The position numbers and the translations under genes are program-made. The notes below the pieces were generated by a model. It worked only from the letters and a program-made list of their open reading frames with translations. It did not search any database and was not told the origin of the DNA. Shown piece by piece: positions 28,261 to 31,020 of a DNA stretch of 64,000 bases. Within the stretch, counting starts at the first letter, position 1. Each line of letters begins with the position of its first letter. The DNA lies in sequence record MK250028.1. One strand, 5' to 3'.

Positions 28261-28410
28261 TAATAACTAATAAAACATAAAACTCGAAATTTGATACAAT
28301 ATCTCTCCTGCATCGCGTCAAAATCTCTTTACCTTATAGTTATTAGTCTTAATTAAAAATAATGTGATACAGAGAGAATTTTATTAAATAATAATTTTCA
28401 TAAAATAAAA

Positions 28411-28450
28411 AAGAGATTAATAAGTTTTGTTTATTGCTTATTAATCTCTT
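28411..28450 (-). terminator. Intrinsic terminator of the uvsY-tnpB transcript
   Basis: 14-bp stem AAGAGATTAATAAG/CTTATTAATCTCTT with a T-tract on the minus strand, 25 nt past the orphan stop at 28476. Confidence 0.7.
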
Positions 28451-28475
28451 TACTTTTCTATTTAATATAATTTCA

Positions 28476-28529
28476 TTAAAACTTCAAACCATGTATCATT
28501 TCAAAAACCTTAATCTTATTATTTATGCC
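28476..28529 (-). repeat. 54-bp orphan copy of the 3' end of the uvsY-like gene; predicted TnpB guide
   Basis: Encodes GINNKIKVFEMIHGLKF*, identical to 29821-29874, with 5 differences that are all at synonymous third positions. Confidence 0.92.
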
Positions 28530-28678
28530 AATATTTGTGTTTATATACTAATATATAAACAATTATTTCTTGTTTCATAGACACTCTACTTTTTAGTATA
28601 ATCATTAGTAATGATTTAGTCATCCATAGTTGGTATCTCCGCAAGCGTAAATTCGGGTAAATATACACCTATTATATT
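28510..28678 (-). ncRNA. Predicted TnpB omega/reRNA (scaffold + guide); boundaries approximate
   Basis: Directly 3' of tnpB. Contains a vestigial in-frame TnpB-type tail (GVYLPEFTLAEIPTMDD*) and a TGTTTATAT/ATATAAACA hairpin just before the guide. Confidence 0.6.
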
Positions 28679-29812
28679 TTAATAATTTATTTGTTTTAAT
28701 CCTTCTGCTAAAATATTTAATGAAGCATTATAATCTCTATCAATCTCTTTACCACAATGTGGACATATCCATTCTCTCTAACTTAATTTTAAATCTTTAT
28801 AAATATGTCTACAATTATGGCAAGTTTTAGATGAAGGATAGAATCTATTTATTATAACCAGCTATTTTCCATACCATCTACATTTATATTCTAACTATTT
28901 TCTAAATTCAAATAAAGATAACTCTTGAATAGATTTAGCAAGTTTATGATTAGACATCATTCCATTTACATTTAAATCTTCAATACAGATAACTTGATTT
29001 TCATTAACTAGTTTTGAAGTGATTTGATGTAAATATGTATTTCTCTAATTTTTTATTTTCTCATGAACTTTTGCAATTTTAATTCTAACTTTATTCCGAT
29101 TATTACTTCCTTTCTATTTCTTACTTAACAACCTCTATAATTTCTTTAATTTCTTTTCTTGATTTCTATAGAAATGTTTATTTTCATATCTATTTCCATT
29201 AGAATCAACGATAAAATCTTTTATTCCTAAATCTAAACCTATTACGGTATCTAATTTTTCTTTTTGTATAATATTATAATATATTAAAATAAACAAATAA
29301 TATTTTTCTGTAGAAGTTTTAATAAGCGTAATTGAATGTATTTTATTTTGATTATGATTTAAATATATTTCATCTTTTTTAGAACATTTAAATAATATAT
29401 TCTTTAACTATTTAATTAATGTTATCCTATTACCATTAATTTTCTTCTTTTTAAATTTAAATATAGTTCTTGTAAATCTACAACTTTGCTTAATATCTTT
29501 CTTTGATTTGAATTTAGGATAACCATTATGTAATTTAAAGAAATTATCATATGCTTTAATTAAATCCTACATTGATTGCTATAAACACATAGCATATACA
29601 TCATTTAAAAAAGTATATTCATCTTGTTTTTTTAAATTAGTCAAATATTTACCTAATTGTGTCCATGATACAACTTGTTTATTCTACTCATACTATGACT
29701 TCTTATAATCCAATAATTTATTATATATAAGTCTACAACAACCTAACTGTTTAGAAATAAATTCTTTCTAAACATTATCAGGATATATTCGTATTTTAAT
29801 ATATTTTAACAT
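28679..29812 (-). mobile_element. tnpB: IS200/IS605-family TnpB RNA-guided nuclease (377 aa), no transposase
   Basis: KIRIYP..G..R..YN helix, YPKFKSK, RuvC GLDLG / IEDL / RDYNAS, zinc finger SSKTCHNC..WICPHCG; 12 in-frame TAG. Confidence 0.93.
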
Positions 29813-29820
29813 AATATTTT

Positions 29821-30351
29821 TTAAAATTTTAAACCATGTATCATTTCAAAAACTTTAATCTTATTGTTTATACCGTAAATAATATTATCAATAGTTGAGA
29901 TGGTATCTTTCATATATTTACAGAAATTATCCAATAAATCAACTGATTCTTTTTCTGCTGATAACTGAGATTCAATCTGTAAATTAATAGCACTTTCATT
30001 CGTATATCTAATTCCAGATGAACCTGATTTTAAAGCTAAATAAATTCCTGATGCTTTAGACTTATAATCTCTCGTTTGCTTTTGTAATATCTTTGCTGTT
30101 CCATAAAATAAGTCTATTGCTTCTTGTCTCTTTAAATAAACTTCATTCATCAAACCATCAATAGATTTCAAATCTTTCATTCGTTCATTTAAATTCTTAA
30201 TAATATCTGTCCACTTATCTTGAAGATTACTCAATGAATTTTCCAATGAATTTTGTTGTGAATTAACATTATTATTCTGATTAGTTTGTTGAACTTGATT
30301 ATTATCTATAGAATTATTATTTTCTGTTACTACTTCATTTTCTTTATCCAT
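29821..30351 (-). CDS. UvsY-like recombination mediator
   Basis: The helical C-terminus LLDNFCKYMKDTISTIDNIIYGINNKIKVFEM resembles the T4 UvsY C-terminus by eye; no TAG. Confidence 0.5.
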   Translation of the reverse strand: MDKENEVVTENNNSIDNNQVQQTNQNNNVNSQQNSLENSLSNLQDKWTDIIKNLNERMKDLKSIDGLMNEVYLKRQEAIDLFYGTAKILQKQTRDYKSKASGIYLALKSGSSGIRYTNESAINLQIESQLSAEKESVDLLDNFCKYMKDTISTIDNIIYGINNKIKVFEMIHGLKF

Positions 30352-30575: not shown

Positions 30576-30702
30576 TAATTTTTCAAATCTAAATTTAATT
30601 TTCTTTATTTAATTTCTTAAATATCTATCATTACCTTAATATCTTAATATTAATTATACTTCACTTTTCAAAAAAAGTCTACTTTTTGTTTAAATATTTT
30701 TA

Positions 30703-30993
30703 NNNNNNNNNNNNNNNNNNNNNNNNNNNNNNNNNNNNNNNNNNNNNNNNNNNNNNNNNNNNNNNNNNNNNNNNNNNNNNNNNNNNNNNNNNNNNNNNNN
30801 NNNNNNNNNNNNNNNNNNNNNNNNNNNNNNNNNNNNNNNNNNNNNNNNNNNNNNNNNNNNNNNNNNNNNNNNNNNNNNNNNNNNNNNNNNNNNNNNNNNN
30901 NNNNNNNNNNNNNNNNNNNNNNNNNNNNNNNNNNNNNNNNNNNNNNNNNNNNNNNNNNNNNNNNNNNNNNNNNNNNNNNNNNNNNNNNNNNNN
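30703..30993. other. Assembly gap (291 N)
   Basis: Run of N. Confidence 1.
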
Positions 30994-31020
30994 TTAATTG
31001 AAACTAAATAATTTAGATAT

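Follow-up and report, generated by a model that had tools for sequence, protein, structure and literature searches.

A transposase-less TnpB/omega-RNA element beside a duplicated host-gene end in Prevotella Lak megaphages, a candidate RNA-guided homing cassette

The locus described here lies in a 64,000-nucleotide (nt) stretch of sequence record MK250028.1 (Prevotella phage Lak-B); this stretch as a whole is called the window, and all position numbers refer to it. On the minus strand, a 176-amino-acid (aa) open reading frame (ORF) for a UvsY-like protein (29821..30351), hereafter the host gene, is followed by an 8-nt spacer (29813..29820), a tnpB gene of 377 aa (28679..29812), about 145 nt of non-coding sequence holding an omega-RNA-like scaffold and right end (28529..28673), a further copy of the final 54 nt of the host gene (28476..28529), and a terminator-like hairpin, native to the host gene, with a T run behind it (28400..28461). 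The copy at the end of the host gene (29821..29874), which supplies the functional last 17 codons and the stop codon, is referred to as the resident copy, and the second, which lies within no long ORF, as the orphan. A preliminary description of this DNA, made from the letters alone, had tnpB starting 8 bp past the host-gene stop and scaffold-like sequence 3′ of tnpB, and both observations stand: the host gene ends at 29821, tnpB runs from 29812, and the block of about 145 nt is conserved among copies. Long ORFs across the window need a genetic code in which TAG is read as glutamine (35 TAG codons occur in one such ORF of 2066 aa), and the 377-codon tnpB frame, which contains 12 in-frame TAG, stays open only under this code. 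The adjoining UvsY-like gene contains no in-frame TAG. Translation of tnpB should therefore depend on the TAG-decoding state of the phage, and that of the host gene should not. Nine GenBank Lak-B genomes carry this locus unchanged, as do several contigs from IMG/VR and ENA, which rules out an assembly artefact. A run of N, either masking or a gap, is present at 30701-30997, just upstream of the promoter region of the UvsY-like gene.

The direct repeat (28476-28529 and 29821-29874) has an alignment score of 92, compared with a maximum of 31 for shuffled sequences. The two copies differ at 5 of 54 positions; all five are third codon positions and all are synonymous, for which the probability by chance is 1.3e-4, and the coordinates and codons agree with those first described. 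When the window was pooled with L148, a second lineage occupied by tnpB at this locus, and L014, a tnpB locus at another Lak gene, all 14 differences between resident and orphan copies were at third positions and 13 of the 14 were synonymous (P~1e-9). This restriction to third positions is the imprint of coding constraint on both copies, as would be expected of two functional alleles. The terminator reported after the orphan is present as an AT-rich hairpin with 25-nt arms and a T run, but a scan that requires GC pairs called no terminator at 28400-28461. The same hairpin sequence also follows the host-gene stop in empty alleles, that is, in relatives lacking the element at this site. One-sided repair, a Campbell-type loop-in and one-ended transfer by the transposase TnpA are candidate origins of the first duplication.

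The designation of the host gene as uvsY-like came without support at the level of sequence: searches of the 176-aa protein against Pfam, PHROGs and PDB profiles gave no match and no UvsY, and neither the protein nor any of its 25 homologues matched PF11056 (UvsY). An AlphaFold2 model (mean predicted local distance difference test score, pLDDT, 78) nevertheless had the T4 UvsY structures 4ZWT, 4ZWR and 4ZWQ as its top Foldseek matches, with a probability of about 1.0 and a TM-score (TMt) of 0.63-0.70 but an E value of 0.13, and helical bundles match easily. A language-model lead also pointed to a UvsY cluster. Judging from the predicted fold, the host gene probably encodes a UvsY-like recombination mediator.

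The protein encoded by tnpB is a bona fide TnpB by its sequence. Pfam detected HTH_OrfB_IS605, OrfB_IS605 and Cas12f1-like_TNB (E = 1e-25, 3e-25 and 9e-17) over the full length, and residues 5-372 of ISDra2 TnpB align with it, also full length, at E = 1e-60. In this alignment the motifs GLDLG, IEDL and DRDYNAS, which the preliminary description had listed as intact RuvC residues, occupy the catalytic D-E-D positions; they are kept in the L148 lineage, and two CxxC pairs are intact. Between the window and the L148 lineage the ratio of nonsynonymous to synonymous divergence (dN/dS) of tnpB was 0.13 at a dS of 0.53, and all three single-nucleotide differences in tnpB of the sister contig L032 were synonymous. 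The gene is thus under purifying selection. The absence of a transposase was borne out, since neither Y1 (PF01797) nor serine (PF00239) TnpA was found in five phage records, one of them a 100%-complete genome of 553,716 bp, in a search limited to these records and run with positive controls. There is likewise no room for a left-end hairpin, as had been pointed out: only 8 nt separate the host-gene stop from the tnpB ATG, in place of the left end of about 200-234 nt seen in canonical sister copies. By the features that define an IS200/IS605 transposon, the locus lacks TnpA and a left end and is flanked by a duplication of its target; the expected right end is present as a hairpin (28538-28561), a 9-nt linker and ATTG. 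We conclude that Prevotella Lak megaphages harbour here an IS605-family TnpB/omega-RNA element that lacks both TnpA and a left end.

The block 3′ of the tnpB stop is conserved in 11 Lak copies, and alignment and folding of 10 of them gave a common architecture comprising a long-range stem, an internal hairpin, the terminal hairpin (28538-28561) and a short linker ending in T-W-T-G. Pairing in the internal hairpin is kept across at least 6 different stem sequences, and the terminal hairpin covaries too. Conservation and covariation of the scaffold are therefore evident from the aligned sequences. A permissive Rfam search of 28300-29000 returned no family, and the minimum free energy of the single scaffold sequence was no better than that of shuffles (z-score -0.98); the structure accordingly rests on the comparison of copies. 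In one RNA sequencing run, a 151-nt contig was identical to 28508-28658, spanning scaffold plus 21 nt, and nothing else of the 2.3-kb stretch was recovered from that run; this is suggestive of an omega-RNA with its guide, in a contig of read-length size that cannot define RNA ends.

Because 11 other copies have a right end of the form T-W-T-G, the right end in the window would finish at 28529 and the guide start at 28528. The preliminary description had the guide starting near 28529 and placed two differences at positions 3 and 9 of the orphan copy. With the corrected boundary, the predicted 20-nt guide (28509..28528, minus strand), the first 20 nt of the orphan past the right end, mismatches the resident copy at positions 2, 8 and 20. 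A boundary that places TATG inside the guide was considered and rejected, given that the orphans of the window, L148 and L014 match the resident copy only past T-W-T-G. A genome scan of the phage for guide-like sites with no more than 2 mismatches found only the resident copy, at 29873.

The target-adjacent motif (TAM) was approached through the insertion sites of the family. Comparison of the L025 copy with its empty site (flanks 96-98% identical) showed that the element lies directly after TATG, has a right end finishing in CTATG, and causes no duplication. At 9 of 10 insertion loci an ATG, mostly within TATG, stands just 5′ of the target sequence. Six of these ATGs are start codons, and there the right end re-supplies the ATG. 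In L012, L016, L025, L028, L011 and L019, the right-end ATG is the start codon of the downstream gene and the guide corresponds to its first codons; the TnpB family of the canonical copies seems to be specialised for gene starts. Taking the insertion sites only, we infer a TAM of the form D-W-A-T-G, mostly TATG. In the window this replaces the TTTAT-type TAM originally suggested: the family motif straddles a Tyr and a Gly codon, and the resident copy has TACG in its place (29874..29877, minus strand), a synonymous change of the Tyr codon. The right end in the window finishes in ATTG, and the homologous ends of sister copies finish in CTATG. In ISDra2 TnpB, a TAM is required and the cut falls 15-21 bp from it (PMC8612924), and cleavage is abolished by double mismatches within positions 1-12 (PMC10097598).

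Twelve different alleles recovered at this locus were empty, and three lineages (the window, L148 and L135) were occupied. A metagenome scan with the host protein yielded 6 loci only, none of them a close empty allele; closer ones came from protein clusters. The nearest empty alleles, L155-157, share 97% protein identity and read TATG followed directly by GCATCAAT, with a single mismatch to the guide, at position 5. They are of the orphan type at all five diagnostic sites, and the sequence downstream of them is common to them and the orphan, indicating that the orphan is the displaced native end of the gene. The preliminary description had proposed this origin and had predicted the empty allele to be expected in relatives; L155-157 read essentially as predicted. 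In addition, a DNA contig from another metagenome (run X2) joins 28521 to 29867 and so represents an empty allele. The possibility that empty alleles are deletion derivatives formed by recombination between the repeats was rejected for L155-157, which agree with the orphan at every diagnostic site, starting with the first.

The resident ends of all three occupied lineages read TTA AAA TTT TAA, and the orphans and the empty alleles of the same clade end in TTG AAG TTT TAA. The 8-nt spacer is identical in the window and L148. Taken together, the common resident end and the common spacer indicate that the gene end, at least the 3′ part of the resident copy, travels with the cassette. This upholds the earlier claim that the cassette carries its own gene end, but the word "recoded" in that claim was an overstatement: the resident variants GGT, AAC and AAA are also found among the empty relatives, in L134 and L136, so that "recoded" should be read as a different natural allele. 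The Tyr codon preceding the target is TAT (in TATG) in 12 of 12 empty alleles, and TAC was found only in two occupied lineages, the window and L135, a distribution that fits the earlier suggestion of a TAT-to-TAC escape change. The L135 lineage is represented by a partial contig that ends before the scaffold; its tnpB (L135:684-1187) groups with the L014 lineage and not with that of the window, which hints at an independent invasion or a replacement at the same site. No full-length copy of the L135-type occupied allele was found in IMG/VR.

Where guides were compared with surviving empty alleles, mismatches numbered 13/96 at positions 1-12 and 171/3034 in the next 380 nt (Fisher P=0.0035). Lak-B4 (occupied) and Lak-B7 (empty) illustrate this closely: two mismatches, at positions 6 and 9, are both synonymous, and the following 380 nt have none. 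Such an excess in the seed is what one would expect of escape from a nuclease that is active, or of co-conversion over short tracts, each a sign of homing; neutral drift does not fit it. The position of the resident mismatches was also considered as an argument for self-immunity by itself and was rejected, since 5 differences in 54 nt place at least one within the first 12 nt 73% of the time.

Duplications of this kind are found at other Lak tnpB loci, where they measure 52-65 nt. L014 has a 52-nt duplication of the 3′ end of another gene around a full element; all 4 differences are synonymous and, by comparison with close empty alleles, the resident copy has the derived state at 3 of the 4. 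At L015 the leader and first nine codons of a gene are duplicated, and at L019 the guide corresponds to the initial 17 coding nt of a gene now 165 nt away. A fifth tnpB, L182 (Lak-B4, MK250023.1, 513882-518015), is present in Lak-B4 only and is flanked by an identical 65-nt duplication of the last 21 codons of a gene, with a terminator of foreign origin upstream and, past the right end, 54 nt of flank that is foreign as well. Its tnpB is 75% identical to that of the window and contains just 2 in-frame TAG; the copy appears to have come in recently from a source in which TAG recoding is less advanced. The identical repeat and the foreign sequence at both ends indicate that duplications of this type arise at insertion. 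The search for tnpB genes with gene-end duplications beyond this locus, advocated in the preliminary description, was thus rewarded within Lak (L014, L015, L182) but not outside it: at the tnpB loci of Staphylococcus Romulus, Aeromonas phiA009, Geobacillus E3 and Fusobacterium phiKSUM, flanking duplication was not above that of shuffles, and in this small sample of four non-Lak phages the duplication is not general to phage tnpB.

Some further elements were noted in the same genomes. L188 (Lak-B7, MK250026.1, 186826-186969, minus strand) is an omega-RNA-like scaffold lacking tnpB, 86% identical to that of the copy at the F locus and flanked by an imperfect direct repeat of about 38 nt; it could act as a guide gene in trans or be what a deletion left behind. 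The F-locus tnpB of Lak-B1 (L171, MK250020.1, 230749-231876) has an extra in-frame TAA and may be a copy in decay; this locus is empty in Lak-B7. An insertion of about 240 nt relative to empty relatives (L014:1616-1852) has 75-92% identical copies at many places in genomes G002, G004 and G001 and looks like a repeat resembling a miniature inverted-repeat transposable element, unrelated to tnpB. Finally, stretches of about 60-100 nt in L169 (285-400 and 3780-3980) have matches at over 60 places in Lak-B7, spread over both strands, and represent a highly repeated intergenic element.

As a whole, this information leads us to consider it probable, though with considerable room for doubt, that the locus is a homing cassette of the type "endonuclease ORF plus carried gene end". 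The layout is that of a self-protecting homing gene drive in which cutting and copying are putative. The mobile unit would consist of the 3′ end of the UvsY-like gene, the 8 nt, tnpB and the omega-RNA scaffold, and would sit right after TATG, 54 nt before the stop codon. With its end provided by the cassette, the host gene would remain intact, and since the native end lies directly behind the scaffold, where guides are read, the RNA would be directed at alleles of this gene that lack the cassette. With the orphan as guide, TnpB would then cut TATG-flanked empty alleles of co-infecting Lak phages, and the occupied genome would be spared by TACG together with the seed mismatches at positions 2 and 8. 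Repair of the cut allele from the occupied genome, with the gene body as left arm and the orphan plus downstream sequence as right arm, would copy the cassette. Guide length, cleavage, self-immunity and copying by recombination are all surmised from sequence comparison; tnpB cassettes do show presence/absence polymorphism between relatives.

Several observations weigh against this interpretation. The resident variants are ordinary alleles of the empty relatives L134 and L136. The resident copy of L148 keeps TATG and has a single mismatch, at position 8, to its own guide, and no empty allele was found that matches a guide perfectly. The tnpB genes of the occupied lineages are 88% identical and their flanks 84-92%; tnpB and flanks having diverged in step, nothing at the locus speaks for a recent sweep, and it may be old and mostly vertically inherited. 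At L182 the guide is unrelated to the duplicated segment, and the RNA contig leaves the ends of the transcript undefined. Moreover, a TAM-like CTATG ends most right ends of these elements, and this, taken with the inferred TAM, leaves the discrimination of self from non-self unexplained; possibly the C at -5 in CTATG matters for it.

Part of this evidence would suit a different history, in which the duplication is a scar of recombination-mediated acquisition: one-sided homologous repair on the left and end joining on the right would have left it behind, the resident copy would be kept solely because the gene cannot do without it, the synonymous-only pattern would come merely from the two copies stemming from two functional alleles, and TnpB might serve retention or nothing. 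The identical 65-nt repeats, foreign flank and unrelated guide of L182 are what such a scar would look like, and the occurrence of the resident variants in empty relatives, the co-divergence of tnpB with its flanks and the flanking repeats at a scaffold lacking tnpB (L188) agree with it. It leaves unexplained, however, the exact abutment of right end and orphan at TATG in the window, L148 and L014, the confinement of TAC to occupied alleles, the enrichment of seed mismatches in empty alleles, and the strong purifying selection on a tnpB with 12 adapted TAG codons. We therefore regard a mere acquisition scar as unlikely.

We give still less weight to the idea that the locus is a weapon against competitors, in which orphan-guided TnpB cuts the UvsY-like gene of co-infecting relatives in the style of marker exclusion by phage homing endonucleases and copying of the cassette is a rare event. 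The anatomy and the seed mismatches speak for this idea just as they do for homing, long vertical residence would fit it, and a homing endonuclease can kill a competitor whose sequence has diverged too far to be converted (PMC13565253). Set against this, homology on both flanks makes conversion the expected outcome of repair, and Lak-B strains that are 99% identical to each other differ in whether a copy is present, which points to events of gain or loss; a weapon of this kind accordingly seems quite improbable. That the locus is an inactive relic or a chimeric assembly of two strains is very improbable and largely refuted, for although metagenome-assembled genomes can be chimeric and the F copy of Lak-B1 has its extra TAA, the locus recurs identically in the nine genomes and the contigs and exists in a second, diverged lineage, and tnpB combines its low dN/dS with intact catalytic motifs.

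Returning to homing, we put forward, tentatively and with doubt slightly outweighing confidence, a broader hypothesis of a natural "home-and-rescue" drive in Lak phages: a TnpB that has lost transposase and left end would insert after ATG in conserved gene ends, bring a cleavage-resistant end, employ the native end as guide and homology arm alike, and so convert co-infecting genomes, favouring seed-escape alleles in the phage population. If true, the locus would be a natural case of a nuclease that has outlived its transposase and acts as a free-standing homing endonuclease, with a specificity written by the gene fragment that it displaces, and an arms race in the form of synonymous seed changes in essential phage genes would be predicted. 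Orphan-type, resident-type and L155-type sites provide concrete testable targets. In the literature we found no description of a phage TnpB that brings a gene end along and takes the displaced one as its guide, and the spread of TnpB between co-infecting phages has been proposed in principle only (PMC13565253).

Among known systems, TnpB/omega-RNA of the ISDra2 type has been associated with transposon-retention homing and a plasmid gene drive (PMC8612924, PMC10097598, 10.1101/2023.03.14.532601, PMC11870625). The Lak locus has in common with it the protein family and catalytic triad, a scaffold RNA encoded at the 3′ end and right end, a guide taken from DNA outside the right end, an unoccupied site beside a short motif as the target and, putatively here, spread or retention through break-induced recombination. 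It differs in that the genome has no TnpA, the element has no left end and its gene has 12 TAG codons read as glutamine; in addition, there is a 54-nt duplication, which is absent from that family, a right end finishing in the TAM-like TATG, and an insertion inside a coding region with the gene end carried along.

The closest precedent for the Lak layout is found in the mobile ORFs (mORFs) of fungal mitochondria, which carry a C-terminal duplication, in atp6 of Allomyces macrogynus and in atp6, atp9, cox2 and nad3 of Glomus (PMC3630166). The order of gene core, inserted C-terminus, endonuclease ORF and native C*-terminus is the same and is found at the Lak locus, and in both systems the native copy is nearer to unoccupied relatives than the inserted copy (L155-157 at 5/5 sites; at L014, 3/4 differences derived in the resident copy). 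Whereas mORFs encode GIY-YIG and LAGLIDADG endonucleases with DNA recognition by protein, and reside in an organelle, the Lak cassette resides in a phage and its displaced end lies where the guide RNA is templated, so that the duplication itself would set the specificity.

SegF, SegG and Mob of T-even phages bring about intronless homing and marker exclusion (PMC13565253). With these the Lak cassette would share co-infecting related phages as its arena, the distinction of self from target by few substitutions and the co-conversion of flanking sequence, all of which are surmised here; they are, however, protein-guided, lie between genes and have no duplicated gene end. Synthetic home-and-rescue and cleave-and-rescue drives place a nuclease and guide in an essential gene together with a resistant rescue end, the original end serving as right arm. 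Those are engineered Cas9 systems in insects, and in Lak the essentiality of the host gene is putative; the layout of the Lak cassette matches the engineered rescue drives independently. The locus links OMEGA nucleases, phage homing endonucleases and organellar mORFs.

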